A stretch of DNA of 64,000 nucleotides, taken from positions 124,001 through 188,000 of the IMG/VR virus record IMGVR_UViG_3300037882_003354. One strand, written 5' to 3'. Below the pieces are notes generated by a model. It was not told the origin of the DNA and ran no database searches. It saw only the letters and a list, made by a program, of their open reading frames with translations. Positions 13,481 to 55,521 of the stretch are shown in pieces. The translations under genes and the position numbers were made by a program. How positions within the stretch are numbered: position 1 is the stretch's first letter; each line of letters opens with the position of its first letter.

Positions 13481-14728
13481 ATGAGAGCACGCGAATTCCT
13501 TAGATTACTTGAAGAAGATGCATCATCTTCTGACCCTTTGTACGGGCTAAAAGTCATGATTGCCGGCAAGATCAAAGATCTTCCACCCACCAAAGAAACA
13601 CAAGACGCCCTGACTGAGATTGAAGATCTACTCAGCAATGTGGGCGCTGGTGGACGACTGGGCTTGATCAATCAGACATTGAGCTCCATTCATGATCCCA
13701 GTGTGACCAAGGCACAAAAACTCCTGGCCAAATACATATTGAGTGTTCCCATGACACGGGAACAACGAGATGATCTGTTCAGTCGGTGGCGTAATGATCA
13801 ACTGGTCAACAAGGATCTGTTGTTGCAGACTGGGCAGCATGAGATCAAGGACATCATACTGGGCTATGATGAGAATCCTGCCATCAAGGAACTCACCATT
13901 GATCTGGCACAGGTACAGGCCATTGGACAGGGCAAGGGAGAATTTCTCCTCAGCGTGTTCAGCAAGAGCATTTCCAAATTGCAGAAGGGTGACCTCATGA
14001 TCGATGGTCACCAGATTGAAGTCAAAACCTATGACGTAGGTGGCGGTCGATTCTATGACCAGGAGGTTCGAACAGCACAGGGGTACAGCGCCTCCGTGGA
14101 GAATTTCAGGAACACCTGGGCTGATGAAATCGCCTATGCATTTCCCAGTCTGGCCAAGTCGGGATTGAAGCTGGATGATCTCATACTGCTGTCTGACCAC
14201 ATTGAAGTAAAAAAGAAAAAGAAGTACTGGGAGTCTGTCCGACAGGTTTTCCAGAATCTGTTTCCCGGCCAGGACACGTCGGGCATCATCGATGCCATGC
14301 AGGTGGGCAGCAGTGGCGCTGCCAAGCAACTGTATGCATTGACCAGTGTCAAGTATTACCAGAGTGTCAAGAAGGACGATTACGGCATTATTTTCATCAA
14401 CCTGTCAGCTGCCATACCCACATTCGTATTCTTTAAAGATCCTGATGAGTTGTCCGACAGTGGACTGCGGTTGCATGCATCCACGGCCTATCCCGTGGCC
14501 GCCATGGATCCCAAGGATGCATATCCACAGATACGTATTGTACCCGGCGGTGGTGGCGTCACCACAGCACCCAGTTCACCCACTGCGTCACGCAGCCCAG
14601 CTGCGGCGGCTGCACCAGCAGCACGTAAACCCAAACCTGCACCTGTTGCAGCACCCGTCGCTGCACAACCCGCACCTGCTGCCACCACACCACCATCGGT
14701 GCCGGCGGACACGCAACAGCAGCCTTGA
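13481..14728 (+). CDS. hypothetical protein with PD-(D/E)xK-like motif and Pro/Ala-rich tail
   Basis: GKGE...KGDLMIDGHQIEVKT; low-complexity C-terminus. Confidence 0.7.
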   Translation: MRAREFLRLLEEDASSSDPLYGLKVMIAGKIKDLPPTKETQDALTEIEDLLSNVGAGGRLGLINQTLSSIHDPSVTKAQKLLAKYILSVPMTREQRDDLFSRWRNDQLVNKDLLLQTGQHEIKDIILGYDENPAIKELTIDLAQVQAIGQGKGEFLLSVFSKSISKLQKGDLMIDGHQIEVKTYDVGGGRFYDQEVRTAQGYSASVENFRNTWADEIAYAFPSLAKSGLKLDDLILLSDHIEVKKKKKYWESVRQVFQNLFPGQDTSGIIDAMQVGSSGAAKQLYALTSVKYYQSVKKDDYGIIFINLSAAIPTFVFFKDPDELSDSGLRLHASTAYPVAAMDPKDAYPQIRIVPGGGGVTTAPSSPTASRSPAAAAAPAARKPKPAPVAAPVAAQPAPAATTPPSVPADTQQQP

Positions 14729-28959: not shown

Positions 28960-28996
28960 ATTTATCCCTGCAAGAATTATCTTGCTATATATCGAT

Positions 28997-31900
28997 TTAT
29001 TTCTTCAATCCGGCCAACTTTAAAATATCGGTCAACCCTTCGCTCATACCCAATTTTGCCTTTAGTGCCGCCAACCCTTCTGGGCTGGTGGGACTCTTTG
29101 TTCTTTCTTTTTCCAAATCTTTACCAGTTACTTTCCAGTCGCCACCCTGCGCTTTACGCTGCGCAGCAGGAATGTCGCTTTTGTTGGGGCTTTCGCTTTT
29201 TAATTTACCAGTACGCTCCAAATCATGCAGCATATCTATACGATCGCGGTAGCCGGCAACACCTGGTTTGATGTCATGTGCGGCCATGCGCTGTTGCACT
29301 GTGGGATTGTCTGCGTGTCGCATGGTGGTGTCATACTGATGACTGTGATCTGGATTATGTTCTTCAGAGGACATGATGTTCGTGTTGAAGTCTTCACCGC
29401 CATGGCCTTGATCACCAATGCCTTCCACTTTACCCTTGATTCGATTTAAGATTTCTTTCAATCCATCAATGGTCAATCCATCACCGCCCACTGGCTTGCC
29501 ATGACGCTCTTGGTATTCTTGTGTGAGTTTTTCCATGAACATGCCAGCCATCTGCTCAGCTTGCTCACCTGCTTGCTCGCCAAACATTTCTGAAATCTTC
29601 TTCTTGACGTCGATGACAATGCCTTCTTCGCCACGGAATGGTCCAACGTCTGGATTGTCCCTGTTGTAAAAACTTTTGACAATCTTGGCCACTTCTTTGA
29701 TCATGCCTTCTTTGCTCATCATTTTGGGAATTCCGCTGCCGTCCATATTTTCAGCAGCCGGTGTCGCAGGAGCCACTGGTTCGGCGGGCGCTGGTTCAGC
29801 AGGGGCGGGCTCTTGTGCAGGAGCCTGTGTGCCACTCATGCCCAGGGCCACAGTGAGTTCTGGGTAATTGTCTGTTGCCCATAATTTAAACACTTCTAGA
29901 GCGTTGGTTTCTGCATCAACATTGGCCATGTCTTTGAACTTGTCTTCTAGATCCGAATCCTCAATGCCCAGTTCGTTAAAAAATTGCCAGGCAGTCTGTC
30001 CATCTGGTCCCAGTTTTAATTCTGGACCCGACTGATCTTGTGGCAATTCTTCCAGTGCTTGCTTCATCAGGGCTATTTGATCGTCTGTCAACTTGCCCTG
30101 TTCGGTAGCATCTGCCCAGTCTTCAAAAGCATCGATGCTTTCGGCTGGTGACTTTTCTTTGGACATCTTCTCTGTTTCACGACGTGCTTTGTCACTGAGG
30201 TTAGTCACACGGCCACGACCGTCTTTCTTGGATGATGCTTTCCATTCGCCCTCATCTTTCCAACTGACTACCCGGCCAGTCTCATCTTTGGTCTCTGACC
30301 TTTCTTCCTGAACATAGTCTGCCAGGTCCACCTGGTTGACTTCGCTCATGATGCGGTGCAGCAATGGGAAATAGCCAGCCAGTTCTTCCTGGAAGGAACT
30401 CTGTGTAAATGTCTGCTTGTATTGTTCCATGGTGACCTCATCCATGGTCAGCCCGTCGTCCATCATGTCTTCTTCATTAAATCCCGCCATCCAGGATTCG
30501 TAGTGACTGCGCCGACCCAGGGCGGCCATCTGTGATTTAAGTTCATGCAGGCGGCCAATGGCACGCTCTGTGATGCCAGTGGCATCGTCATGTAAACTTG
30601 CATGCTGTACTTTGCGCTGGAATTCAGCCAGTTGAGCGATCTGCTCGCTCATGCCTATGATGGCCTTGCCTGCTGGATCATGCGGTGTGCCACCATGATC
30701 CACGTGTTGTGCCATGGCAAATGCACCGGCAGTGTGGATGAATGGATACTTGAATCGCTCGCCCTCTTTATTCTGTATGAAGATGGCCTTGATATTTTTG
30801 CGTTGGCTACGGCTGCCTGCATATTCTTCGTCCACTGCATGGGCGTGCCGCACGATGACTTCTGTTTTACCTTGCACGGCGCGGCTGGTTTTCCGGCTGC
30901 TTTTATTATTCCAACGACCTTCTTGTAAGCCTTCTGCCATGTCTTGCTGCCCAGCATCCAATCCTTTGCCGTACAAGGACACAGCGCGAGCGCCTGCTCC
31001 ATAGGGCGGATTTAGGTTGATACCCTGCCGGCCGTGTTCAACACCTATGGTATACCAATCAATTTTATCGGAACCACCAGCCTTTTGTGCTTGCTGTTTC
31101 CAGAAAGTCAAACTGTCCATGCCTTCTGACACGCCTTGTTCAGGATTCTCATCATGCCAAATGTGTTCATTTTCTTCACCATACACCTCGACAAAATCAT
31201 CAAGCGTCATGGTGTCTGCAGAAATCTTCATATCTTCTATTGATACGTTTTCCGACATGCCTTGCTCTGGAAGTTGTCCCGTAGGCCCCGCCATCTTGCT
31301 TCTTGGACTGCGGGTGATTTTGTATTTGGTTAGTCGATTGGTCTTCTTCATATTCGCAACGATGCGCTGGGCCTGGTCCACACTGTGGTATGTTCCTGCT
31401 TTTTCACCGTCCCTATAAATGTGATAGACATACTCCTTGTCAACTGGATGATCCAATGTGTAATTGACGGAACCGTCTGCTGCCGAGCCTTCCGACATGC
31501 CTTGCTGATCCAACATACTCGGCAAGCCCTGTGCCTTACGAGCCATATGACGGGCATAATCTACTTTATCGTCATTAACAACATCAACTAACTCGGCCAT
31601 TTTCTTTGCTATTAAGGCGTGTGCTGTTGATGGCTTATATTTTTTCATATTCAACTTTTTAGCAACATCAATGTAAAGTTGTAAATCATTGCCATCATCG
31701 CCACCGTTAAATCCATCCGGGGCAAATTCATTTAGAGAGCCTTCCGCCACATGGTGTCTAGTTTTTTTATTTTCGTTCATGGTGTTTGTATCCTGTTCTT
31801 TGGGGCCTTGTGTTGCGGCCAAATGTTTGAAATCATTTTTGTCCAGGTTGGTCTTGGCAATGTCCCTGGTGTCAAAACGCAATAGTCTGCGCTTGGCAAA

Positions 31901-32182
31901 ATATCGCATCTCTCTTAAAAAACCATACCACATGCGCCGCACGGGATCATCACGATTTTCAGTGATACCCTGGCTGTAGTAAACTTTTAGACTGCCCAGA
32001 TCCCCCAGGCTGATGCTCACGCGGCCCAGGTTGTTGCCTTCTATGACAAAGTCAAAGTCGAAAAATCTCGCTTGCGCGGGATCAATGGTGACTGCGCCTG
32101 TTTTGTCGCCCATTTCTAAATTACTGAAACGGCTGCGAACTTTATCAAACAGGTCTTGGCTGATTATTTGAATGGCTTCCAT
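28997..32182 (-). CDS. large acidic putative internal virion protein / polyprotein
   Basis: 1061 aa; late TAAATA 5 nt upstream; repeated QG(M/V)(S/A)EG; ends ILKLAGL. Confidence 0.75.
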   Translation of the reverse strand: MEAIQIISQDLFDKVRSRFSNLEMGDKTGAVTIDPAQARFFDFDFVIEGNNLGRVSISLGDLGSLKVYYSQGITENRDDPVRRMWYGFLREMRYFAKRRLLRFDTRDIAKTNLDKNDFKHLAATQGPKEQDTNTMNENKKTRHHVAEGSLNEFAPDGFNGGDDGNDLQLYIDVAKKLNMKKYKPSTAHALIAKKMAELVDVVNDDKVDYARHMARKAQGLPSMLDQQGMSEGSAADGSVNYTLDHPVDKEYVYHIYRDGEKAGTYHSVDQAQRIVANMKKTNRLTKYKITRSPRSKMAGPTGQLPEQGMSENVSIEDMKISADTMTLDDFVEVYGEENEHIWHDENPEQGVSEGMDSLTFWKQQAQKAGGSDKIDWYTIGVEHGRQGINLNPPYGAGARAVSLYGKGLDAGQQDMAEGLQEGRWNNKSSRKTSRAVQGKTEVIVRHAHAVDEEYAGSRSQRKNIKAIFIQNKEGERFKYPFIHTAGAFAMAQHVDHGGTPHDPAGKAIIGMSEQIAQLAEFQRKVQHASLHDDATGITERAIGRLHELKSQMAALGRRSHYESWMAGFNEEDMMDDGLTMDEVTMEQYKQTFTQSSFQEELAGYFPLLHRIMSEVNQVDLADYVQEERSETKDETGRVVSWKDEGEWKASSKKDGRGRVTNLSDKARRETEKMSKEKSPAESIDAFEDWADATEQGKLTDDQIALMKQALEELPQDQSGPELKLGPDGQTAWQFFNELGIEDSDLEDKFKDMANVDAETNALEVFKLWATDNYPELTVALGMSGTQAPAQEPAPAEPAPAEPVAPATPAAENMDGSGIPKMMSKEGMIKEVAKIVKSFYNRDNPDVGPFRGEEGIVIDVKKKISEMFGEQAGEQAEQMAGMFMEKLTQEYQERHGKPVGGDGLTIDGLKEILNRIKGKVEGIGDQGHGGEDFNTNIMSSEEHNPDHSHQYDTTMRHADNPTVQQRMAAHDIKPGVAGYRDRIDMLHDLERTGKLKSESPNKSDIPAAQRKAQGGDWKVTGKDLEKERTKSPTSPEGLAALKAKLGMSEGLTDILKLAGLKK
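30930..31756 (-). repeat. five 17-nt dispersed in-frame repeats, consensus CAAGGCATGTCGGAAGG
   Basis: copies at 30930-30946, 31122-31138, 31248-31264, 31488-31504, 31740-31756. Confidence 0.85.
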
Positions 32183-32193
32183 AGTATTATTTA

Positions 32194-33783
32194 TTAATAA
32201 CTGCTGATATAGATGGGCATGGGCAGGTCGTGTTCTTCCATGCCCTCCTGGTCTCGCATCTTTTCATAGATACTTGGGTCCCAATCCTGCAGGATCATGA
32301 TCATGCGTACAGCCAACAGCAGGCTGGACACCAGGTCATCGTGTTGTCCGGGTTTGGCCTTGAAACTCAAGGCTGCAGACACATATGTTTTGAGTTCACT
32401 GATCAGGCTCTTGCTGTGCAATTTAAGTTTTTTATTCTCAATCAGTTGTTTTAACTTGGCACAGGCATTGATCTTGGCCACATGTGTGGTATTAAATCCC
32501 TTGCGGAACCTGCGCACATGACCCTTTTTAACCGGCTCGCTTAAAAACATGCCAGGGAATGTTTCTTCTCCCAGCTCACTAATGGCCACCAGGGCCGCTT
32601 CACCTATGCTGTTGTTTTCCACACTGTAGTATATGCTGGGCACCAGGCCCTGCTTGGCACATTCATCCTCGATAAATTTCAGCAGATCTCTAAGCACACG
32701 TGCCTGCCCCTGCACCGGCGTGGTATTGTGGTTCCATTCACACACCTGTTCCAGACTGGGCACTTCTATGACTTCAATGGCTGCATAATCTCCACCAGTG
32801 CCCAGACTGGGATCCAGAGATACGATGTAGGTCATGGCAGGGTTCACTCGTTTGTACCATCGGGCCTGCCCCATTTTCATCAAGGGTTCTTTGCCTTCCA
32901 AATTGGACAGGGTGATGCTGTTAACCAAGGTTTCATCGAACACCAGGAATATGCACTCGTGTTCTCTTTGAAATCTTTCAGCCCCCACACGACTGCGTTC
33001 GGCCTCAGCCCAGATTTCGTCACGATCTGGATGTTCACTCCAGATGGCAATACAGGGGTAGAAACCATTCCTGCCCAGTTCGGTCCGATTGCCGTATTCG
33101 TCGAATCTCTTGTTGGCCTCGTTCCAGATCTGTGCAAACTGATCCTCGTCGCTGTTGGGGGTGGATGTGATGATGGCTTTACCGCCAGTGGCCAGGGTAG
33201 GGCTGATACTGGTCCAAAACTCAGTGGCAATGCCAGGTTCCACATAGGCAAACTCATCCAGATAGATCAAGCTCAAGCTCATGCCTCGTCCAGTGGTTTC
33301 AGTGGTAGTCTGTGCCACAATGCGGCTGCCATTTTCAAATTCAATACTCTGCTTGTTGTAACTGGTGACACCCGCACGTATCCAATCAGGGCATGTCTCG
33401 TATGCATAACGCAGACGTTGCATGATTTCCTGCGCACCTGTATATTTGTGCGCAGCAATCAGTATGGTGCTGTCGGGCACAAACATGGCATACCATAACA
33501 GGTAGCCCACCGCAGTGGTGGTTTTCCCCAGCTGACGCCCCAGCATGTTCACACTGAATCTGTGTTTGTGATAACTGTCCAGCAGCCGTTGTTGGTAGGG
33601 AAAGGGGGCGTATTGTATTTTGCCCTTGGTGGGGTGTTGTATAAAAAAGTAATTGGCTAAAAAATATTCAGGGCCAGTGTCAGCATGCTGGCATTTCATT
33701 AGATCCGCAATGTCCTGCTCAGAAAATTTCTGTGTGACATTGGCCTTTTTAACCAAGTTGCCGTCTAAGTTTTTTGATCCCAT
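32194..33783 (-). CDS. terL: terminase large subunit (gp17-like)
   Basis: GRQLGKTT, YLDEFA, ITSTPN, F.REHEC, DPSLGTGGDY, HDDLV. Confidence 0.93.
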   Translation of the reverse strand: MGSKNLDGNLVKKANVTQKFSEQDIADLMKCQHADTGPEYFLANYFFIQHPTKGKIQYAPFPYQQRLLDSYHKHRFSVNMLGRQLGKTTTAVGYLLWYAMFVPDSTILIAAHKYTGAQEIMQRLRYAYETCPDWIRAGVTSYNKQSIEFENGSRIVAQTTTETTGRGMSLSLIYLDEFAYVEPGIATEFWTSISPTLATGGKAIITSTPNSDEDQFAQIWNEANKRFDEYGNRTELGRNGFYPCIAIWSEHPDRDEIWAEAERSRVGAERFQREHECIFLVFDETLVNSITLSNLEGKEPLMKMGQARWYKRVNPAMTYIVSLDPSLGTGGDYAAIEVIEVPSLEQVCEWNHNTTPVQGQARVLRDLLKFIEDECAKQGLVPSIYYSVENNSIGEAALVAISELGEETFPGMFLSEPVKKGHVRRFRKGFNTTHVAKINACAKLKQLIENKKLKLHSKSLISELKTYVSAALSFKAKPGQHDDLVSSLLLAVRMIMILQDWDPSIYEKMRDQEGMEEHDLPMPIYISSY

Positions 33784-33796
33784 GTGAGTATTTACT

Positions 33797-33820
33797 GAAA
33801 AGAATAGCCTCCGAAGAGGC
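33797..33820 (-). terminator. rho-independent terminator, cUUCGg loop
   Basis: GCCTC-TTCG-GAGGC-TATTCTTTTC. Confidence 0.75.
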
Positions 33821-33844
33821 CATCTGGTTCAGGTGTCTAATGTA

Positions 33845-34837
33845 TTAAGCAGAATGTACTGTAGCTTTCTTGCCCTTGGCTTGCAGGCTTCTGGCAATAT
33901 TTTCTGCTTGACGGCGGTCGTCGAATGTTTTCCAAGTACGACCGTCAATTGCCACTGCAAACTTGGCGGGTTCAACTTCGTGACCAAGTTCGTGTTGCAA
34001 TTCTTGTTTCTTAAAAGACCGATGTGAAAGGTCGCCCATGTCGCCTTCAGCGACAAAACGCTTGTACTCGTCCATGAGTGACTCTTCCATGGTGGCAAAA
34101 GCCTTGGGACGGTCACCATCCATACGATCGCCAACACCAGGGTGGCCAGCTGGATCTTGGTTCATACGTCCAGGATCAATCATGGCATCTGCATCCATGT
34201 CTGGTATGTCATCAACGCCAGTGGGCGTATTATCATACTGCCCTTCCTTGGCTTCTTCGTCGTCTTCATCACCAGCGTCATCACCGTTGATCCGGTCAAT
34301 CACAGCTCGCATCTCGTCACCAGCACTGGCGGCAGGACCCATGACTGTCATGGGCTCGGCAGTTAATGTCACAGGTGCTGGTTCTACACCCAGATCATGT
34401 GGCTCAACCTTGTGTACACCAGCCAGGGACATAATGTCCTTGAGCATGTTGCTCAACTCTTCACCACTGCCGGCAGTGATGTTAACACTAGCGGGAGTAT
34501 GAGGGTGTGCCATGTCGGGCATGGGAGACATGCCGCATGCTGACGACCCTTCTGCAACACCTTGGTCTTCAAGCATGTTTGCGTCTTCCAGTTCAGACAT
34601 CACCAGGGTCGACAGGTATTTTAAATCAGTGGGGTTCTTGCCCACCATTTTTAAATATTTCGATACATGATCATCGATATTACCACGATTTATGTTTGGC
34701 ATTCCCATCAATTTTTGTGCTATTTTTTTTGCAGCATCCTCATCCCGCATGCCAATATTGGACGAAACATCTTCTGCCATGTTGGTATTTTTGGCATCCA
34801 ACTCGGCCAGGCGCTTGATAACGTCAATCATGTTCAT
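33845..34837 (-). CDS. acidic putative head/internal protein
   Basis: 330 aa; NMAED, QGVAEG, FVAEG repeats; AAGGA SD. Confidence 0.7.
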   Translation of the reverse strand: MNMIDVIKRLAELDAKNTNMAEDVSSNIGMRDEDAAKKIAQKLMGMPNINRGNIDDHVSKYLKMVGKNPTDLKYLSTLVMSELEDANMLEDQGVAEGSSACGMSPMPDMAHPHTPASVNITAGSGEELSNMLKDIMSLAGVHKVEPHDLGVEPAPVTLTAEPMTVMGPAASAGDEMRAVIDRINGDDAGDEDDEEAKEGQYDNTPTGVDDIPDMDADAMIDPGRMNQDPAGHPGVGDRMDGDRPKAFATMEESLMDEYKRFVAEGDMGDLSHRSFKKQELQHELGHEVEPAKFAVAIDGRTWKTFDDRRQAENIARSLQAKGKKATVHSA

Positions 34838-34839
34838 AA

Positions 34840-35430
34840 TTATTTCCTTGTTTGGGCTGATGCCAACACAGTTCCTGCGTCTGCAGGGGTATCAGTATTA
34901 TACTTGGCTGGGCCGTCTGTGGGGATTTCTTCCCCACGAGCCTTGCGTTGCAACTTTAGCAGAGCGTTGAGTTCTTTGACAAACTCACCGTTGTATTTGT
35001 CACCATAGTAATCTTCAAACTTGGGACTGCCTGCTTCTTTATAATCAGGATCATCAAGCAGTGCACCGGTGCGTGGCTCCACCAGAGTTTGATATTCTTC
35101 ACTGGGCTCGCCAGGACGACGAACTACTAAATTTTGTTTGCTCACTTCTAGGCCAGCGGCCAAATATTCTGTAAGTTCCTGCTGAGTGGTGGGATACTGC
35201 AAGCTGACTTCGTAGATGCTGACTTCGCAATTCTTGACCTGCGGGAAGTCCAAGGGCAGTGCCTGAATGGGAGTCTTGCTCACCTTCTTGAACACATTGA
35301 CTTCAAATCGTTCCAGCATGGATTTCAATTTTTCTTCTTGTTCAGAGGTAAAGTCGCCTGCTACCTTGACTCGAAAGTCATATGTTTTACCAGAGGTAGA
35401 TTCTGAGAGATAGTCGAGGAATGTTTTCAT
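34840..35430 (-). CDS. hypothetical virion-associated protein
   Basis: MKTFLDYLSE start typical of T4-like head proteins; late box upstream. Confidence 0.7.
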   Translation of the reverse strand: MKTFLDYLSESTSGKTYDFRVKVAGDFTSEQEEKLKSMLERFEVNVFKKVSKTPIQALPLDFPQVKNCEVSIYEVSLQYPTTQQELTEYLAAGLEVSKQNLVVRRPGEPSEEYQTLVEPRTGALLDDPDYKEAGSPKFEDYYGDKYNGEFVKELNALLKLQRKARGEEIPTDGPAKYNTDTPADAGTVLASAQTRK

Positions 35431-35928: not shown

Positions 35929-36372
35929 TTATCGTGTCTTAGCGCCGCCGTGAAAAATATCGCCCTCACTGATAATTCTAAATTTAATTCCCTGCTGCTT
36001 GCACCAGTTGTTGGCCGCCGCCCACTTGGCTTGATTTTTAACAAACTGCGCCTGGTTGTAGGGATTCTTGCCCACTTTTTCTTTCAGAGTCTGGTTGAGT
36101 GGTTTGATTTCTATGAGTTCCACATGCTTGACCTGGTTTCGATCGATGTAGGTGATTAAAAAATCAGGCACATACACAGTCTGCTTGCCAGTCAGCGGAT
36201 CCCTGTAGGGAATACGCACGCACTCACTGGCCCACTGCTGTATGCTGGGGTTATTGTCACAAAACGTCATGAAAGACAATTCCCAACCGCTGCGGAATGT
36301 GGGCTGTCGTGTGCCCATGTATTTGTCTGGATTTTTAACCTTGTATATACCCTGATTAAACTTGAGACTCAT
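35929..36372 (-). CDS. head completion nuclease-like protein (gp4-like)
   Basis: FRSGWE..FM.FCD.NP, WASE..IPY, YVPDF, IEIKP, KW.AA..WC. Confidence 0.85.
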   Translation of the reverse strand: MSLKFNQGIYKVKNPDKYMGTRQPTFRSGWELSFMTFCDNNPSIQQWASECVRIPYRDPLTGKQTVYVPDFLITYIDRNQVKHVELIEIKPLNQTLKEKVGKNPYNQAQFVKNQAKWAAANNWCKQQGIKFRIISEGDIFHGGAKTR

Positions 36373-36749
36373 GCTATGACGTTTCTGACCACTTCCTGAT
36401 ATGGTGTAAATTCCAGCGCGTATCCTAGAAAACTTGTCTTAAACCTATTGAAGTTGACAATCTCTGAAACCAGCGCACTGATTTCCACACTGTCTAGTCC
36501 TTTGAGTGTGTCCAGGATGGTCATGGGATTGTAACCGTCAATTTTTGCCTGCTTCATGATGATCACCGTGATGGATTCTGAAGATGATTCATCAAAACCC
36601 CTGCTGGTAAAAAAGCCCTTGATGGCATCGAAGTTAACTGCACTCAGCTCAAATGGGGTGTCAAAGTAAGCATCAAAGGCACGGAGTGTGACGCGGCTGC
36701 TGTTGGGCACGCTGCTGTTGGGTATGTTGTTGAATTGATTGGTTGCCAT
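36369..36749 (-). CDS. hypothetical protein
   Basis: GGAGG SD before MATNQF at 36749. Confidence 0.7.
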   Translation of the reverse strand: MATNQFNNIPNSSVPNSSRVTLRAFDAYFDTPFELSAVNFDAIKGFFTSRGFDESSSESITVIIMKQAKIDGYNPMTILDTLKGLDSVEISALVSEIVNFNRFKTSFLGYALEFTPYQEVVRNVIA

Positions 36750-48283: not shown

Positions 48284-49147
48284 TCAAAGCCGACGATTGC
48301 TCAAGACAACTTTGATGGCCTTGGCAAAAGAGAATGAGTTCAACAAATCTTGTAGTTGATATTTTGCAATCACTGGAGAACCAACACCACCCACCAGACA
48401 AAGATTGGCTAGATCGTCTCCCCATTTTTCCGCAAATACATCGAAGTACTTTTGATTGCGTTGATTAATTTGTTGTTGATGTTCAGGACCTGCCCAGGTG
48501 CTCTTGCCGGCAAAGTGCAATATATAACTGTGACTGTAGTATTTTACCGGAAAATTATGGGAGATGGCGCGTATGCGATAGTCCACATCTTCGCCCCCGC
48601 CCACACCAAACCTCTCATCAAACAATCCCACTTGGTTGTACACCGTGGCAGGCAATACAAATGCATAAAAACCCATCAACAGGCGTTCGAAAAATCCCGA
48701 CCGCAGCCGGTCCCGGTGTGCCTGAGCAATCTTGCACAGATCAGCATATTGATTGTTATACTCATCCAGGTTCATGGTCTGCTGCAAGGTCAGTTGACCG
48801 CTGGCGTACAAATGAGTTTGGTTGCAACTGGGCATCACAATGGCATCTGGATGTTGCGTCAGTTCATGGGACCAGCCGGGGGTGAATACGATGTCGTTGT
48901 TGAGCACAATCAGAGTTCTGCCACGCGCAATGCCAATCATGTTGTTGACATTCTTGGCAAAACTCTGGGGTGTTGTATTGGATATCACGCTGGCTTGAGT
49001 GTCGTATGTGCCCTCGTTATCATTGTCAATCAGGTACACCTCATCCCCTGTGCCCAGCCGTGTGCTGCTAAAAAAAGAATCCAGGGCAAGTTTTGTGTAA
49101 AAATTAGAACCCCGGGTGGTGATCATGACGTATACATTGCCCATCAT
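48284..49147 (-). CDS. GT2 family glycosyltransferase
   Basis: LIDN, SFA.NVN, LNNDI, VGLFDERF..GGGEDVDY..R. Confidence 0.85.
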   Translation of the reverse strand: MMGNVYVMITTRGSNFYTKLALDSFFSSTRLGTGDEVYLIDNDNEGTYDTQASVISNTTPQSFAKNVNNMIGIARGRTLIVLNNDIVFTPGWSHELTQHPDAIVMPSCNQTHLYASGQLTLQQTMNLDEYNNQYADLCKIAQAHRDRLRSGFFERLLMGFYAFVLPATVYNQVGLFDERFGVGGGEDVDYRIRAISHNFPVKYYSHSYILHFAGKSTWAGPEHQQQINQRNQKYFDVFAEKWGDDLANLCLVGGVGSPVIAKYQLQDLLNSFSFAKAIKVVLSNRRL

Positions 49148-49944
49148 TTTTTATTCCAAAAATCCAAACTCAACGATCGATAGTATTCGGTCAATTCTGT
49201 TCCAATCACTTGTTCAGCAGGTGGACTGGCTCGTTTTAATTCCGGCCTAATGTCATGCAAGCCCATCAATCCATATGCTCGATCATTTTCTGGTTTGGGA
49301 GTCAGGTGCGCATGATTGAGATTGATAGAATTTGGTATTTCTAAAAAATCAAATATTCTACCCACGGTTGTCACAGAGTTTTCCACAATGTCACCATAGT
49401 CTAAAAACAACATGCTGGTGGGAGCATACTCCCAACCCAATTTTAAACTGGTCCATGGGATGTTGATATACTTTTCCCATAATAGTCTGCATCTATTTTG
49501 ATTGTTCACCGGCTTGTTTGTGTCAATTAACTCTTGATCAATATATGTGATCGTGTGGTTGTTTCTTTCTATTAACAGAATAAAACTGCTGAGAATTTCT
49601 GGAATGTCTCTGACTGTGCAGATGATCTTGGGCGGCTGGCCGTGTAGCTCGGTTAGAAACTTTATATGCCGCGGCCACTCTCTGTGTTTATCTATGATGT
49701 TGGTCTGGGCAACATGCCGGTAACTGGATTCAAATACTCCGTGGACAATGTTGTTCAACTGTCTGGGATCTTGATCCACCAGATGGCCAGTGATACCTGG
49801 CCACCTGTTTTTGATGACATTAATAAGATCCAACACTGGGCTGGTGGTGGTAGTGTAAACATCGGGATGCTGACTCAGCATGCTGGCCAACACCGTGCTA
49901 CCGCTTCTGGGCAGACCCGATATCATGAACACACGTTTATCCAT
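49144..49944 (-). CDS. sulfotransferase
   Basis: 5'-PSB motif SGLPRSGST, DK.R.W, VRD..EILSS. Confidence 0.85.
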   Translation of the reverse strand: MDKRVFMISGLPRSGSTVLASMLSQHPDVYTTTTSPVLDLINVIKNRWPGITGHLVDQDPRQLNNIVHGVFESSYRHVAQTNIIDKHREWPRHIKFLTELHGQPPKIICTVRDIPEILSSFILLIERNNHTITYIDQELIDTNKPVNNQNRCRLLWEKYINIPWTSLKLGWEYAPTSMLFLDYGDIVENSVTTVGRIFDFLEIPNSINLNHAHLTPKPENDRAYGLMGLHDIRPELKRASPPAEQVIGTELTEYYRSLSLDFWNKK

Positions 49945-50857
49945 ATGCCCGTATGGTGTTAAAAAATTGTTGCCATTCCAATTTACGCTGTTCCCAGGAC
50001 CAATAGTGATTGTAATGTGTGGACTGGCGATGTATGTGGTATTGAGTGCTGACCTTCCAATACTCTGCAATGGCCAAATCTAGTTCCCGCGCAAATCTAG
50101 ATGCCAATACCTGGCGATGGTTTAGACCCACCGGAACCATGCGTGCCCAATCGCTGCATGTTTCAGGCAATGCACCATGGCTGGTGGTCACCTGCAGGCA
50201 GCCGGCGGCGGCAGCTTCTATGGCTGCCAGGCAACTGGTTTCTTCAAAAATACTGGGATATGCAAATACATGCGCTTGTTGCAATGCTGCCCTGACCACA
50301 TCGTTGGGTTGATATTCGTGGAAATTTACACCAGGTGTGTTTTTTGTACGTTTAAATATTTCGTCAAACCTGCCCTGGGTTATTTTTACAAAATGATCCC
50401 CGTATATTTTGGCACTGCTGTACACATCGAGTTCAATGTCTGTTCGATCCAGTAACTCAACTGCATCTAACAATATGTCCAGACCACGCCAGGGGGTGCT
50501 GGTGTAGATCAACTTGGTCTTGCCTTCACATCTGGGCATGAACTGTATGGGCTCAATGGCATTTTTTATGACAATACTCTTGTATGCCGGTACATTGAAC
50601 ACTTGACAAAATTTATTGTACTGCCAGTGACTGACAAATACAAAATAATCCACACGTTCTATAAACACTGGATTGGACATCAGTGCCACTTGTTCTTCGT
50701 TGGTGTTCAAGTGTTGCCATACCACATTGATCTTGTTGGGGTCAATTTTTGCATGATCGCACGAACTCAAGATCAGGTTCACTCGGTCCTGCCAGTCGGT
50801 GCCCACATGTTTTAACATGTTGAAATACAGTATCTCACTGCCGCCCATGGGATTCAT
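49937..50857 (-). CDS. GT4 family glycosyltransferase
   Basis: GGSE, VFVS.WQ, I.NAI, YTSTPWRGL, YPS.FEETSC...IEA.AAG. Confidence 0.85.
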   Translation of the reverse strand: MNPMGGSEILYFNMLKHVGTDWQDRVNLILSSCDHAKIDPNKINVVWQHLNTNEEQVALMSNPVFIERVDYFVFVSHWQYNKFCQVFNVPAYKSIVIKNAIEPIQFMPRCEGKTKLIYTSTPWRGLDILLDAVELLDRTDIELDVYSSAKIYGDHFVKITQGRFDEIFKRTKNTPGVNFHEYQPNDVVRAALQQAHVFAYPSIFEETSCLAAIEAAAAGCLQVTTSHGALPETCSDWARMVPVGLNHRQVLASRFARELDLAIAEYWKVSTQYHIHRQSTHYNHYWSWEQRKLEWQQFFNTIRAYG

Positions 50858-51504
50858 AGACTCTCCGCAAATTTCATCAGGGTATCGTATATCTTGACCT
50901 TGGGTTTGAGCATACGATAAATGGGATTTTCCAGACGCTCACGGGCCTTTTGCCCCTTGCCAGTCAACACCAGCACAGGCGTGGCGCCTGCTCGCTCGGC
51001 CATGGTTAGGTCTTCTATGGTGTCGCCAACATAGGCGCCGCCGGCTATTTTGACGCCAGGACTGTTATTTTCCGCATGTTTAAACAGTCCCAGATTGGGC
51101 TTGGCATAAACATCATCCTTGCGTGAACTGGTGTTGTACCAGATGCCATCTATGCTGGTGCATCCTGCCTGCCCCAGCAAATTCAACATGTGCCGGTTGC
51201 AATCTTCCACTTGCTCCACAGTGACCTTTCGGTGACTTACACTGGGCTGATCATATAAGAAAAGCACCCGGTGTCCCTTGCTGCGTATGATGGCAACAGC
51301 ACGAAATGCATCTGCTATGGGAATAAATTTGTCAGGACCAGTTATTGCATCATGACATTCGCACACCACACCGTCCCTGTCCAGAGCAATGGTGAATTTA
51401 TCAAAAGTCGCCGGCATGACCAGGGCAGTAGATGTTGCAATACCGGAGTTCTCGCTCACCGCGGCATTGGGCAACATGTTTTTGTCAACACTAAATCTGC
51501 CCAT
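50854..51504 (-). CDS. D,D-heptose 1,7-bisphosphate phosphatase-like HAD (GmhB-like)
   Basis: LDRDGV, KP..G.F, VGD...D, LVLTGKG. Confidence 0.75.
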   Translation of the reverse strand: MGRFSVDKNMLPNAAVSENSGIATSTALVMPATFDKFTIALDRDGVVCECHDAITGPDKFIPIADAFRAVAIIRSKGHRVLFLYDQPSVSHRKVTVEQVEDCNRHMLNLLGQAGCTSIDGIWYNTSSRKDDVYAKPNLGLFKHAENNSPGVKIAGGAYVGDTIEDLTMAERAGATPVLVLTGKGQKARERLENPIYRMLKPKVKIYDTLMKFAESL

Positions 51505-51507
51505 GAT

Positions 51508-52233
51508 TTACTCGTATAGTGATTTAATATCTTGCGGCGTGGAGACACGTTGTTTTATACCATCCAGCCATCCTGGGAAATCAGCAGTGAACAAATTGTT
51601 GGTGTTTTGTGAACAGGTGGTGGTGGGCCATGCCCAGATGTCTATGCCCAGGTCCTTGAGTTTGTTGCACAGCACCTGACTCTCATTAAAGAATCTGCCG
51701 TATTGTGTCTGATGCTCAAATACCACCTTGACATCATTGTTGTTTTCATCTGTGATGGAGACGTTGCTGTTCATCAAGGCTTGAATCACAGGCCGGTCCA
51801 GCTTCATGCAGGCTGTGCTGGCATAGGAAACTTTAAGGAATCCCTGCTGATCAAACTGCAGATTGGATTTGTCAAAATCAATGTCATATATCACACTGTT
51901 GGTCTTCTTGCTGATCACTGGCAGCACCACCACCGGCAGGTCAGACATCATGATTCGAACCATTTCATTGGCATCCCAGGCCAGATCATGATCAACAAAC
52001 ACCAGGCTGTCCACTTCCTGCTCAAATGCTATCTTGAGCAAATCGTTTTTTGCCATGGGAACAGACCGATCGTTGCCGATGAAAACCGGTATCACTGTGA
52101 TGCCCACGCTCATGGCAGACTTGATGGTGTCTGACAGACTGTGTACATAGAATACATCAAGTTTACTTTCCCGGGCCACAGTGGCCAGGATTACAAGTTT
52201 GGATTTTAGTGCTGTGTTATTTGGTGTCATCAT
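51508..52233 (-). CDS. GT-A fold glycosyltransferase-like, divergent paralog of 52230..53009
   Basis: AKN.L, FVDHD, degenerate ED motif. Confidence 0.6.
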   Translation of the reverse strand: MMTPNNTALKSKLVILATVARESKLDVFYVHSLSDTIKSAMSVGITVIPVFIGNDRSVPMAKNDLLKIAFEQEVDSLVFVDHDLAWDANEMVRIMMSDLPVVVLPVISKKTNSVIYDIDFDKSNLQFDQQGFLKVSYASTACMKLDRPVIQALMNSNVSITDENNNDVKVVFEHQTQYGRFFNESQVLCNKLKDLGIDIWAWPTTTCSQNTNNLFTADFPGWLDGIKQRVSTPQDIKSLYE

Positions 52234-53009
52234 ATGCCTTTGTTGTTGATATATCTATTGAGGTAGTTGTTGCCGTAACTGGTGCGGGCGGCTGGTGGTG
52301 TTTGTGTTGTAGCAGGTGTGGCGGTGGGTCTGGTCTTGGCCAGCCAGGCATCAAAGTTTCCAGTGTACTTTTTAAATCCAATATGGTTGCAGGTGATGCT
52401 GGTGTCCAACCAGGTTTTAAATCCCAGTTGTTTGAGTTTTCTGCACAGGTGGATGTCTTCGCTGATCAAGCCGCCATTTTCCACAACCACCTCGAACACC
52501 CAGCGTCGGTCTTTGTTTTGGTCCAATTCCACATACACTGGACTGGCATCCCATATGGCATCCACTGCACGACGACTGAACCTGAGAAAACCAGTGCCTA
52601 GCCCATCAACCTCCAATAAATTGGTCACAGGGTCCTTGGCAGCGTATGGATCATCCATCTTGGCCACATATAGTTCAGTCTCACCCTTCTTGGGGTAAGT
52701 GCCGCCCACAATGTCCACGGGATAATTTAACAGTCGGTAGAACCATTCAGGTTCCCACTCAATGTCATTGTCGATGAATATGATGTCGTCGCAATCCAGT
52801 TCCCTGACCAGAGCAATAGTGTCGTTTCTGGCTCTTTGTACCAGGGCATCATAACTGACCCAGATGGGGATGATTTCCACATTCATCTCTGCGGCTAGTT
52901 TGACGGTGTTGACCAGACTGTTCACATACCATACATCAATGCTGCCATCATAGCAGGGTGTTCCCACCATGACTCGTCTTTTCTTTTTTATTTCCATCAT
53001 GCCATCCAT
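52230..53009 (-). CDS. GT-A fold glycosyltransferase
   Basis: TPCYDG, VQRARN, FIDND, GG.YPKK, GTGFL, SED..LC, CNHIG. Confidence 0.75.
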   Translation of the reverse strand: MDGMMEIKKKRRVMVGTPCYDGSIDVWYVNSLVNTVKLAAEMNVEIIPIWVSYDALVQRARNDTIALVRELDCDDIIFIDNDIEWEPEWFYRLLNYPVDIVGGTYPKKGETELYVAKMDDPYAAKDPVTNLLEVDGLGTGFLRFSRRAVDAIWDASPVYVELDQNKDRRWVFEVVVENGGLISEDIHLCRKLKQLGFKTWLDTSITCNHIGFKKYTGNFDAWLAKTRPTATPATTQTPPAARTSYGNNYLNRYINNKGI

Positions 53010-53821
53010 AACATTTGTCGCTTGATATGGTCAAAATCATATTTCCAAAAACTGCTGGTCACATATGTTTGCCATAGGTCTGCAGGAATAATGGGCTTCC
53101 TGGCCTTATATTCTACACGACGACGAACAGTATGTAAACCAGAAATATTGGCCTGCTGATCAAATTCGTCGTAACTGTCTTCCACATTTTCAAAGTCGTG
53201 TTCAAACCAGGGTTCATTGATAAACTTATAAATTTGTTGCATGGTTTCCCTGGGACGTTTGGTCAACACATCATAATCCACCACACACAACATGTCTTTT
53301 TCGTTGCCATACATGGCTTGCTTGGTACAAGCAATGGGGCCGCTGACGTAACCACCGCCACCATCCTGGCTCATCAGCATGTTCACTCGATTGAACACCG
53401 TGGGCAGGTCCTGATGCTGAAACAATGCCTTGATGGTGTAGGGATTCCTGGCGTTCAACTGCTCGAAACTGTCCAGAATCCAGGGCACATCCCTAATGCA
53501 CACTATGATCTTGCTGGCGGGAAACAAGTCGCGCACCATGGGCGTTTGTGCACACCAGGCTCGATTGGTGTTAAAGCAAACCTCAGGTCCACCTTGGTAA
53601 AATGTGGAAAATAATCCGCGTATCAATGCTGCCCGTTTTTCCACAGGAACTGCCGACTCCATGCCCACTGCGGTGTGCGTCACTTGCAGTATGTTCCTGG
53701 AATAATCCTGCAATGGGTCAGAAATACTTGCATGAAACCTGGGGTTTTGTTTCAATATGGCACTGAGCAAGGTGGACCCACTGCGTGGAAGTCCGGATAT
53801 GAAGTGATATTTTTGCATCAT
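52997..53821 (-). CDS. sulfotransferase
   Basis: FISGLPRSGSTLL..IL.QNP, IRD..WILDS, GLH.VR. Confidence 0.85.
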   Translation of the reverse strand: MMQKYHFISGLPRSGSTLLSAILKQNPRFHASISDPLQDYSRNILQVTHTAVGMESAVPVEKRAALIRGLFSTFYQGGPEVCFNTNRAWCAQTPMVRDLFPASKIIVCIRDVPWILDSFEQLNARNPYTIKALFQHQDLPTVFNRVNMLMSQDGGGGYVSGPIACTKQAMYGNEKDMLCVVDYDVLTKRPRETMQQIYKFINEPWFEHDFENVEDSYDEFDQQANISGLHTVRRRVEYKARKPIIPADLWQTYVTSSFWKYDFDHIKRQMLWMA

Positions 53822-55521
53822 TCTTTCACCAACAATTTACCCAGATCAGGCAGGTACAGATACTTTATATCCGACTTGAGCAGAGTGTTGATGGCGTCAA
53901 CCAGGGTTTCCACCAAGGGTTCCCCTGCCAGGTTGAAACTAGTGTTGAACACCATGGGAACCGATGTCCGGGTATAAAATGCCTGGATCACAGCATGGTA
54001 ATGAGAGTTGTCCTGTGCGTTGACCGTCTGCACTCGACAGGTGCCATCCACATGAGTCACTGCCGGAATCTCACCCAGTTTGTCAGTGGCCACATCAATG
54101 GCGTACATCATGAATGGGCTGGATTTTAGACCTCGCATGTCAAACCAGGTGGCAGCCTGTTCTTCCAGTATGCTGGCAGCAAATGGTCTAAACCATTCCC
54201 GACCTTTAACACGGTTCACACGGTCCTTGCCATCTTGAACACGCGGATCAAACAACATGGATCGGTTGCCCAGTGCCCGGGGGCCGCCTTCTGCACGACC
54301 ACTAAACATGGCCACGATGTTTTGGGTGGCCAATAATTCTGCAACGTCGTCAGCCAGGGCATGTTGCATTTTAAGTTGCGGCACTTGTGCCAGCAACTGA
54401 TCCAACATCTGATAGTTGGGTTGTGCGCCCAGGTACACATGCTTGAGTGGTCTGACCACTGAGTCCTCACTGTGCAAATGCCAGGCCAGTCGTGCCAGCC
54501 CCAGTGCAGTTCCGCCGTCGTGGCTGATGGGATCCACATAGAGATTGATGTCTTTACATCTGTCCAGGAGGTAATAGTTGGCCACACAGTTGAGTGCATA
54601 CCCACCAGCCAAGACAACATTTTTAATGCCAGTGGCAGCCACTGCTCGTTCGATCAGGATGCCCAGGAGTTCCTGTGTTTCCTGTTGCACATGGAAGGCC
54701 AGGTCGCGGTCCATGTCGGTGACTTTACTGAAGTCCCAGTGCCATTCCTTGGGGTCTTGTTTGCGTCGTAGATCAGGGAATCTATCCTCATCAATAAATG
54801 CACCAGCAGGATACATGGGCAACAGCAGGTTTTTATTGCCGCGGCCTTCTACGAAAAATGCAGGGATGGCTGCGTTGCGTTTGCCATAAGGCGCCAGCCC
54901 CATGGTTTTGCCGGCTTCGATAAATCCAAAACCCAGATACTGACTGACTGCTTCGTATGCCTTGGTGATGGTGACGGAATTGTCAAATTCCTGCAGGCCA
55001 TTGTTGAAGTAGGGAGTGCGTCCGTCAGAATATCTCTTGTACAAGGGCTCAAATGCAGCTGGGTAACTGCACTTGTAGACACTTTCTGTCTCGTATCCGC
55101 CCACCGGTGTACCAGTACCGTCTGGACCTGTGGTGGTGGACACCATGCTGCCGGCACCGTCCACCACAATGGCCAGGGCTTCAGTAAATCCGCTGTTGTA
55201 GAACGCACCAGCGGCATGGCCCAGGTGATGTTGGTGTCCTAGATTGGTGACCTTGACACCAGGATTGAATTTACGCACCAGGGCCGAGTAACTGTCCTCA
55301 CCGGTCCAGGGCAAGATGGCCAGTTCTGGATTGGTGCCACCAATCACCAGTTCGTCAATACGGTGACTCTGCAGGCATTCCAGCATGGCACGGAAGGGAT
55401 TGCCGTCATATTTCATGCGACTCAGTCGTTCTTCTTCTGAATAATAAACCACTTCACCGTCCACCACCAGGCATGCGCTGCCATTGTGGCCGGGATTTAT
55501 AGCAAGTATTGAATACGTCAT
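53818..55521 (-). CDS. O-carbamoyltransferase (NodU/CmcH/TobZ family)
   Basis: GHN.S, EEERLSR.K, HHLGHA, VDGAG, GKTMGLAPYG, GG.ALN, EGGPRALGNRS, RE.FRPFA, NTSFN. Confidence 0.92.
   Translation of the reverse strand: MTYSILAINPGHNGSACLVVDGEVVYYSEEERLSRMKYDGNPFRAMLECLQSHRIDELVIGGTNPELAILPWTGEDSYSALVRKFNPGVKVTNLGHQHHLGHAAGAFYNSGFTEALAIVVDGAGSMVSTTTGPDGTGTPVGGYETESVYKCSYPAAFEPLYKRYSDGRTPYFNNGLQEFDNSVTITKAYEAVSQYLGFGFIEAGKTMGLAPYGKRNAAIPAFFVEGRGNKNLLLPMYPAGAFIDEDRFPDLRRKQDPKEWHWDFSKVTDMDRDLAFHVQQETQELLGILIERAVAATGIKNVVLAGGYALNCVANYYLLDRCKDINLYVDPISHDGGTALGLARLAWHLHSEDSVVRPLKHVYLGAQPNYQMLDQLLAQVPQLKMQHALADDVAELLATQNIVAMFSGRAEGGPRALGNRSMLFDPRVQDGKDRVNRVKGREWFRPFAASILEEQAATWFDMRGLKSSPFMMYAIDVATDKLGEIPAVTHVDGTCRVQTVNAQDNSHYHAVIQAFYTRTSVPMVFNTSFNLAGEPLVETLVDAINTLLKSDIKYLYLPDLGKLLVKE

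Follow-up and report, generated by a model that had tools for sequence, protein, structure and literature searches.

A short conserved peptide bounds exchangeable modules in proteins encoded beside the terminase gene of a lake jumbo phage and is a candidate prohead protease site

Results

In a 64,000-nucleotide stretch of the IMG/VR virus record IMGVR_UViG_3300037882_003354, which comes from a lake jumbo phage of 322 kb, the gene for the large terminase (TerL) lies between two genes whose products, of 330 and 1061 amino acids (aa), repeat a short peptide with the consensus (E or Q)-Q-G-[VM]-[AS]-E↓G, where the arrow marks the position after the Glu. We refer to the whole stretch (bases 124001-188000 of the record) as the window, to the peptide as the linker, and to the two proteins, p330 and p1061, as its carriers. 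Segments bounded by the linkers come and go, and are exchanged among the p330 family, the p1061 family and many other string-of-modules proteins of a large clade of lake jumbo phages. From the sequences we consider it probable, at roughly two chances in three, that the linkers are cleavage sites of the gp21-like prohead protease encoded by the same genome; the carriers would enter the prohead by means of a scaffold-like ..LAGL motif. A preliminary description of this DNA, drawn from its letters alone, had proposed a mobile pool of modules that is bounded by the repeat and shared across genes, and this proposal is supported by evidence stronger than the pair of modules on which it had been based.

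The linker is conserved as a peptide

The strict form of the motif, [MV][SA]E[GN], occurs 16 times in the whole genome (~101,000 aa in 369 open reading frames, ORFs, from a naive caller that is the source of all ORFs outside the window), and 11 of these copies fall within three ORFs: p1061 has six, p330 has two, and a 719-aa ORF that lies outside the window has three. Jointly, p1061 and p330 hold 8 strict motifs against 0.11 expected from its frequency elsewhere in the proteome (Poisson P 5e-13). Residue shuffles that keep composition gave P<5e-5 for p1061, 0.002 for p330 and 1e-4 for the 719-aa ORF, with 0.07-0.15 copies expected and 2-6 observed.

The codons vary from one linker site to the next (Val is written with four, and Ala, Ser and Gly with three each), and the 17-mer of DNA has a single other copy in the window, at 31122-31138 with 3 mismatches, plus one chance-like match. 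Because the synonymous codons differ and the 17-mer is nearly unique in the window, the repeat is held at the level of the peptide, and the idea of a DNA repeat was rejected. An intein-like or otherwise self-excising element was rejected as well: the modules start with Gly (or Asn/Asp) after the Glu and end in ..[SA]-E, with no His-Asn. GVAEG and QGVAE are the commonest 5-mers among 74 otherwise dissimilar proteins that have a module in common, and over 434 sites, collected with a search pattern in which P1 is set to E and P3 is restricted to M, V, I or L, the P3 residue is V in 63%, M in 23%, I in 8% and L in 4%.

The 719-aa ORF (genome 269407..271566, minus strand) is itself a string of modules with six strict or near-strict linkers, and resembles metagenomic polyproteins such as P0250.

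Architecture of p330 and its family

The p330 gene (33845..34837; all p330 and p1061 features lie on the minus strand) sits just upstream of the TerL gene, and its product comprises a leader, an N module, a conserved core and a C module. The leader (aa 1-22, 34772..34837) ends in M-A-E↓ and is the most conserved part of the family. The NMAE↓D site (aa 19-23, 34769-34783) and the linker QGVAE↓G (aa 92-97, 34547..34564), whose last residue starts the core, flank the N module (aa 23-96, 34550..34771); from E22 to E96 this is exactly the 74-aa segment that had been pointed out earlier, with motif positions that were right to 1-2 bases (34548-34564 had been given for QGVAEG). The core (aa 97-264, 34046..34549) is acidic and mostly disordered, encloses a scaffold-like L.DI..LAGV (aa 128-143, 34409..34456) and ends in the linker FVAE↓G (aa 261-265, 34043..34057), which precedes a C-terminal module, as had also been noted; this C module is 66 aa long (aa 265-330, 33848..34045), with a folded part at aa 293-329 (33851-33961).

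A large protein collection contains 523 p330 homologues of 182-568 aa. For each family, p330 and p1061, the best 120 members were studied, and the metagenomic proteins among them may include fragments. The core is common to 120 of the 120 p330 homologues listed, and the family follows one plan: a leader ending in [IV]-x-E, optional N modules, a junction [LV]-[AE]-E↓C-G-M between N module and core, a core ending in K-x-F-[VI]-[AS]-E, and optional C modules. The leader 5-mers LAELD and RLAEL are found in 106-108 of the 120 members, and the leader end, M-A-E↓ after 22 aa in p330, reads [IV]-[VI]-[KR]-E↓ in the homologues, so that a short N-terminal leader ending in a protease-site pattern is present in both. 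The minimal members (P0056 and P0046, 182-183 aa) consist of leader and core alone. K.F[VI][AS]E at the core end is conserved across the family, and many members terminate right after it; some cores end in QEFIAE↓G, and some members finish in ..DILKLAGLK. The fixed junctions of the family drift in sequence yet keep hydrophobic-x-E (IVKE, LEEC, FISE, QEFIAE).

Presence and absence in homologues, the check that had been suggested for the module proposal, gave a clear result, with whole motif-bounded segments gained and lost even among proteins 81-89% identical to p330. The N module is present in P0001-P0004 and P0008 and absent in P0005-P0007 and P0056, which have the rest of the protein in common; P0005 and P0007 carry extra C modules, P0004 carries a different C module, and the extra C module of P0007 stands on the N-terminal side of the core in P0008. 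The C module is missing from many p330 homologues, and its own family counts 17 members. In L006, a syntenic relative with the same gene order, the p330 orthologue has the same leader and core, holds ~340 aa in place of the 74-aa N module, and ends a few residues past the equivalent of FVAE, without a C module.

Pfam and PHROG scans place p330 in no family; a match of the family to DUF5854 (E 0.067) was discarded, being found in one of seven members only. Modelled over its full length in the ESM Atlas, p330 has a predicted local distance difference test (pLDDT) score of 0.50; a feature search of the Atlas gave nothing informative. The Cys straight after the junction Glu (..E↓C-G-M-M..) is conserved in most members, and cutting there would give an N-terminal cysteine; in p330 itself (aa 97-106, window 34520-34549) that Cys lies five residues further on. 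A lipoprotein signal at this Cys was rejected, as no signal peptide stands ahead of it.

Architecture of p1061 and its family

The gene of the second carrier, p1061 (28997..32182), lies immediately downstream of that of TerL. Between VAE↓G and MAE↓G the protein holds an insertion of four modules (aa 146-417, 30932..31747): M1 (aa 148-231, 31490-31741), M2 (aa 232-311, 31250-31489), M3 (aa 312-353, 31124-31249) and M4 (aa 354-417, 30932-31123). At its C-terminus, an MSE↓G site is followed by the tail ..DILKLAGLKK (29000..29047). The L006 orthologue runs from ..NMNES directly into KWNQKSSKKTSRAV, without residues 146-417 of the window protein.

More than 2367 homologues of p1061 were found, typically of ~700 aa. 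In an alignment of 121 sequences insertions concentrate at five hot spots (positions ~134-138, 627-654, 800-814, 990 and 1042-1048), and the four-module insertion sits in the first of these, which falls on a conserved junction (M-N-E↓S / L-Q-E↓G) that is still recognisable as V-S-E↓S in phage PA5oct. Among insertions of >=30 aa (n=85), 39 have a strict motif within 10 aa of their left end, compared with 6% of random control windows. The same scaffold-like tail ends 57 of the 121 sequences, and also a 976-aa homologue of the cultured phage Phosso. A match of p1061 to LPD15 is weak (14.9 bits against a cut-off of 27). In one lake strain, window 29495-29671 (aa ~837-897) is swapped for 174 unrelated letters, a stretch of near-equal length that lies away from strict linkers.

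Modules are shared between families and vary between strains

Members of the p330 and p1061 families are connected by 330 BLASTP matches at E<1e-4, with up to 69% identity along 95 aa (P0081:362-455 with P0124:379-473); another example is P0024:256-326 with P0146:145-215, at 68% along 71 aa. Five shared modules were displayed, and in four of them the matched segment starts at the motif on both sides, the P0079:P0154 pair being the exception. M3 is 57% identical to the C-terminal extension of the p330-family member P0102. The 120 best p330 homologues contain 64 variable segments, 7 of which match insertions at five p1061 hot spots. A search with residues 146-417 of p1061 against 1.8 billion representative proteins returned 76 proteins, most of them matched by a single module and at any position. 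M1-M4 each match independently, in proteins of 77-1477 aa, many of which are module strings with the same linker (e.g., P0250, P0245 and P0259). Searched by tblastn against 50,697 phage records, p330 and the p1061 insertion gave no match, and no phage deposited there has the modules. Pfam found nothing in ten string-of-modules proteins beyond a sub-threshold ParB_N inside an insertion of P0145 and a stray TAT_signal match.

For a view of the phage population, contigs of four sequencing runs were compared with window 28990-34840 (5,851 letters), an analysis that at the level of contigs cannot give strain frequencies. A lake-run contig of 9,998 nt matches along this stretch, with 313 other letters in place of 30926-30950, where M4 ends in the linker QQDMAE↓GLQEG. 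Matching loose ends occur at the same two places in a run of another study; these translate to ..AQGVSEGDD and MGNPDRMRGI.., the edges of an extra module (~96 aa) of P0124, and the extra module of the lake strain is the one shared at 69% with the p330-family protein P0081. Strains that are 90-99% alike therefore differ by one module at this linker.

Contigs from a lake metatranscriptome match the window at 33962-34794 (p330) and at 29793-30061 and 31631-31781 (p1061) at ~99%, which hints at expression of both genes; DNA carry-over is possible, and transcription is not proven by such contigs.

Module folds

The pair from which a module pool had originally been proposed was the C module of p330 and a segment of p1061 that corresponds to M2. 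Both strings quoted for this pair are present, in the C-terminal part of the 330-aa ORF and in the 1061-aa ORF. Their resemblance has no support from BLASTP (E ~2), weak support from profile-profile comparison and agreement at the level of modelled fold. With hhalign profiles of 17 (C-module family) and 37 (M2 family) sequences, P was 0.0012-0.0018 at a probability of 15-19%, the alignment paired exactly the two quoted strings, and five control module pairs gave P 0.08-0.76. AlphaFold2 models, built from module alignments with each module aligned separately, show strand-strand-helix-strand for both, in the hhalign register (elements at 34-38, 41-46, 49-61 and 66-70 in the C module, and at 26-32, 35-40, 43-56 and 62-68 in M2). 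The cores are confidently modelled (pLDDT 90-97 for the C module, 85-90 for M2) and the linker-bearing ends are disordered (pLDDT <50), as expected of protease-accessible joints.

Since this fold is simple and common, sharing it is no proof of homology, and on the models the pair may be distantly related or may simply represent the same very common small fold twice. Foldseek against the PDB found nothing significant for either (the best match of the C module was a designed EEHE mini-protein), and a BFVD search returned only uncharacterised small phage proteins. In a shape search of the ESM Atlas the modules superposed over short stretches on viral proteins that have CTP_transf_like or Zeta_toxin domains; we treat these as leads only.

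Prohead protease sites and putative targeting signals

About 45 kb from the carriers, the same genome encodes a T4-type head module with a gp20-like portal, a gp21-like protease, a 363-aa gp22-like scaffold and a gp23-like capsid protein. The protease is a Peptidase_S77 match (PF03420, 91.7 bits, E 6.8e-27, genome 203239-203670) between the portal-like and scaffold-like genes. T4 gp21 cuts after the Glu of L/I-X-E (PMC9026906). Sites of this kind are kept in the head proteins: in 77 related loci the capsid protein retains A-L-L-E↓G near residue 17 and an invariant L-x-E near residue 40 whose middle residue is free (A, S, T, G, I, V or M), and the scaffold in related loci retains [LIM]-x-E ~35 residues before its end. 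The capsid L-x-E lies ~25 residues before a conserved ILPVIRRV block and is presumably the maturation site.

Across the genome, [IL]..[LI]AG[LIVM] matches four ORFs. One match is an unrelated hydrophobic stretch, and the remaining three ORFs carry L.DI..LAG: at the end of the scaffold (after ..MLSE↓G), at the end of p1061 (after ..GMSE↓G) and inside the core of p330. The scaffold tail, ..[DE][IL]R[KR]LAG[LI], is invariant in 75 related loci. The p1061 tail would thus be a copy of a scaffold docking peptide, and the site that precedes it would let the protease release the cargo. A complex prediction for the capsid protein with the last 45 aa of p1061 scored 0.02, a value that counts neither for nor against binding. 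The gp21-like protease (genome 203110-203739, minus strand) itself ends in ..YLKE↓SLLAIIKGLK, an L-x-E site with a loosely scaffold-like tail, which would fit self-processing.

Both TerL neighbours in PA5oct are virion proteins by electrospray ionisation tandem mass spectrometry (ESI-MS/MS). The syntenic counterpart of p330, upstream of TerL, is an ESI-MS/MS virion protein with a similar ..LAGV motif (..LRLAGV), and p1061 residues 429-614 match a PA5oct virion structural protein identified by the same method. In Phosso, the protein encoded upstream of TerL carries ..LDLAGV.

The capsid-targeting sequence of T4 is MKTYQEFIAE, and string-of-modules proteins often start with leaders that recall it, such as MKTLREYIDLLE.., MRATEFIVE.. 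and MKINDIAE↓G. The first ten residues of T4 IPIII are such a sequence and are later removed (PMC9026906), and T-even internal proteins are very diverse outside it (PMC3012670). Further leaders of similar appearance are MKTFLDYLSE↓S, MRAREFLRLLEE, MKILDLIRE, MRSKEFIVE, MILRELF.., MKIFELLRE, MRFSDLL..LQE↓G and MRIHDLIIE↓N; ORFs with such leaders lie at window 34840-35430 (minus strand) and 13481-14728 (plus strand) and, outside the window, at genome 269198-277313 and 210325-210942, and may be further capsid-targeted proteins.

Discussion

The linker separates small, independently folding modules of proteins encoded on either side of TerL, and we propose that each copy would be cut by a T4 gp21-type prohead protease after the Glu of hydrophobic-x-E. 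The carriers would reach the prohead through the scaffold-like ..LAGL motif or tail together with the conserved N-terminal leader; once inside, cuts at every linker would free the modules as separate small proteins and detach the targeting pieces. New modules could insert at an existing site without harm to the carrier, because they would bring, or recreate, a site on each side. More speculatively, and by analogy with T4 internal proteins, the freed modules might remain in the head and pass into the host along with the DNA. That they act early after injection is proposed on the model of T4 IPI, Alt and the polyvalent proteins (PMC5512222).

We favour cleavage by the prohead protease as the best reading because the genome encodes an S77 protease, its capsid and scaffold proteins keep L-x-E and [LIM]-x-E sites, respectively, the fixed junctions drift while retaining hydrophobic-x-E, and the module ends are disordered. 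Also in its favour are the gene-specific enrichment of the motif at peptide level, its position at the left ends of p1061 insertions, its frequency in otherwise dissimilar proteins with a common module, the L.DI..LAG shared with the scaffold, the virion location of the PA5oct homologues and the lake strains that differ by one module at a linker. Several observations weigh against it. The P3 residue of the linker is mostly V or M, which the published T4 rule (L or I) does not contain, and the linker, with Q-G before and G after, is far more conserved than known gp21-type sites require; this conservation could reflect a different reader, or common descent of linkers that travel with their modules. 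Strict motifs are rare at the right ends of the p1061 insertions (7 of 85), although many of the 85 finish in a looser x-x-E. The 719-aa string-of-modules ORF adjoins a DNA polymerase gene, away from the head genes. Finally, neither carrier has a sequence match to T4 internal proteins (IPI, IPII, IPIII, Alt) or to a known head-protein family by Pfam, PHROG or the tblastn search of phage records described above.

The same excess conservation would suit an uncleaved, flexible hinge of ordinary multidomain proteins, kept alike because each module carries its own hinge when copied or moved, and modelled module ends that are disordered are also what hinges look like. An invariant Glu has no reason in a plain hinge, however; the fixed positions drift yet keep hydrophobic-x-E, the same pattern as at the conserved capsid and scaffold sites; and many family members stop right after the Glu-containing motif. 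We regard a hinge as unlikely. A still smaller chance is given to cutting by some other protease, of host or phage, for example after entry into the cell and not in the head by the prohead protease. The V or M at P3 and the strict Q-G..G context, unlike the capsid L-x-E, would agree with this, as would the position of the 719-aa ORF outside the head genes. Against it, no second candidate protease was seen in or near the carrier genes, the motif is concentrated in proteins with virion-protein relatives, and the scaffold-like tail is preceded by such a site.

We think it very improbable that the repeat is mainly a DNA-level recombination signal, in which a short stretch of common sequence would favour the exchange of segments. 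Such a role has reportedly been proposed for the 5' ends that T-even internal-protein genes have in common, exchanges do happen at the places of the linkers, and the window has one further match to the 17-mer, with 3 mismatches; but the widely differing synonymous codons place the conservation in the peptide, and homologous recombination would be poorly served by 18 nt that include several mismatches. A DNA-level signal may add to module mobility, though it would not be the reason for the conservation. Chance or composition in acidic, low-complexity proteins is refuted, even with p330 and p1061 rich in E, G, A and M, by the composition-keeping shuffles and by the coincidence of the motif with indel edges in relatives.

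A larger scheme, of which cleavage by the prohead protease could be part, is put forward tentatively, and we hold it to be on the doubtful side: the clade would load ever-changing small effector domains into the capsid as polyproteins, a mimic of the scaffold tail and T4-like leaders would dock them, the protease would free them at QGVAE↓G, and they would be injected with the DNA. If so, the module pool would be a large untapped reservoir of early-acting (e.g., anti-defence) proteins, and foreign proteins could be packed into phage heads with the linker and the tail as portable tags.

Several known themes come together in this system: T4 capsid targeting with gp21 processing, multiple cleavage of head proteins in giant phages, and polyvalent proteins. 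What sets it apart from each is that cargos are chained or inserted, the linker is uniform, a scaffold-like tail is present, and the modules are tiny, unannotated and move between genes and strains. The closest likeness is to T4 IPI-III and Alt, small and diverse cargos with a short conserved leader that is removed at hydrophobic-x-E by an S77 protease (PMC9026906, PMC3012670). The phage studied here likewise has an S77 protease, and its clade has leaders such as MKTFLDYLSE↓S and MKTLREYIDLLE.. and some cores that end in QEFIAE↓G. T4 encodes its cargos singly, each gene supplying a leader for its product, whereas here several are strung together in one polypeptide or sit inside larger virion proteins, with a much more stereotyped linker and also a C-terminal scaffold-like tail.

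In the giant phages phiKZ, 201phi2-1 and SPN3US short motifs direct cutting after Glu in many head proteins, and long propeptides are cut at several sites (PMC9026906, PMC10052503). Unlike the system described here, phiKZ-like phages use the motif S/A-x-E, the pieces are described as propeptides that mostly leave the head and not as folded, exchangeable modules, no sharing of modules between genes has been reported, and the phage lineage is different. Polyvalent proteins are strings of 2-15 varied domains that are encoded near virion genes and predicted to be packaged, processed by peptidases and delivered into the host (PMC5512222). The module strings near virion genes, and the weak matches to LPD15 (p1061) and ParB_N (P0145 insertion), are reminiscent of these. 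However, in ten string-of-modules proteins Pfam found no embedded peptidase or recognised effector domain, the modules are very small (40-95 aa), and the prohead protease would do the processing, at a linker that is uniform.

In encapsulins, whose cargo carries loading peptides, and in phage scaffolds with C-terminal coat-binding helices, a short terminal peptide docks proteins inside an HK97-fold shell; the shared ends of the scaffold here (..[DE][IL]R[KR]LAG[LI] in 75 loci) and of p1061 (..DILKLAGLKK) have a similar appearance, with binding putative. Viral polyproteins such as those cut by picornavirus 3C are also alike, in that a single protease acts on a short site repeated between the functional units. 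Such polyproteins belong to viruses of eukaryotes and comprise a fixed set of essential units, whereas the units here are optional and vary between strains. A full-text literature search for the motif string returned nothing on phages, and a limited search of the literature on T4, giant phages, PA5oct and phages with ribosomal protein bS21 found no description of the system.

If the linkers are protease sites, one short motif would reveal the true functional units of hundreds of metagenomic phage proteins that otherwise defy annotation, and would flag these proteins as likely capsid cargo. It would also define a simple route by which phages gain packaged proteins, in that a module placed in a cleavage site would be excised at maturation with the carrier unharmed. 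The leader, the linker and the ..LAGL tail are candidate protein-packaging tags, and the question of what giant-phage heads contain besides DNA, and how this changes, becomes directly testable. Cleaved or not, the swapping of modules between strains at a fixed peptide is a clear case of ongoing domain shuffling.

Genome context and additional observations

The virus record is 322,512 bp long and has direct terminal repeats. Its capsid protein is 68-71% identical to those of the jumbo phages CBB and GAP32, which we take to be Rak2-like, and also to those of Phosso and a Vibrio phage. Relatives of the capsid protein are encoded on at least 596 IMG/VR contigs, and near-identical DNA is present in lake and freshwater metagenomes of more than 10 studies.

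In the window, p330, TerL and p1061 belong to one leftward-transcribed gene block. It runs from a tail sheath-like ORF of 1002 aa and a tube-like ORF of 211 aa through several small ORFs to a small-terminase-like ORF, a 196-aa ORF, p330, TerL, p1061, and gp32-like and RecA/UvsX-like genes. The carrier genes, flanking TerL downstream of the sheath and tube genes, are thus among virion or late genes. TerL (32194..33783, minus strand), between both carriers, matches Pfam Terminase_6N and Terminase_6C and PHROG 36964. The 196-aa ORF (34840..35430, minus strand) matches PHROG 14802 ('virion structural protein') and is the one that starts with the T4 capsid-targeting-like leader MKTFLDYLSE↓S.

A bS21 gene lies outside the window at genome 37144-37296 (minus strand; PF01165, 41 bits), remote from the terminase and capsid genes, in contrast to published lake bS21 phages. 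A glycan-modification cluster at window 48284-55521 (minus strand) encodes family-2 and group-1 glycosyltransferases, two sulfotransferases, a HAD-like hydrolase and a carbamoyltransferase; ORFs of 863 and 2323 aa adjoin it and may be fibres. Another size-variable gene in the terminase block is the 126-aa ORF at 36369-36749 (minus strand), whose 402-aa counterpart in L006 (2394-3602) has a long extra C-terminal part.

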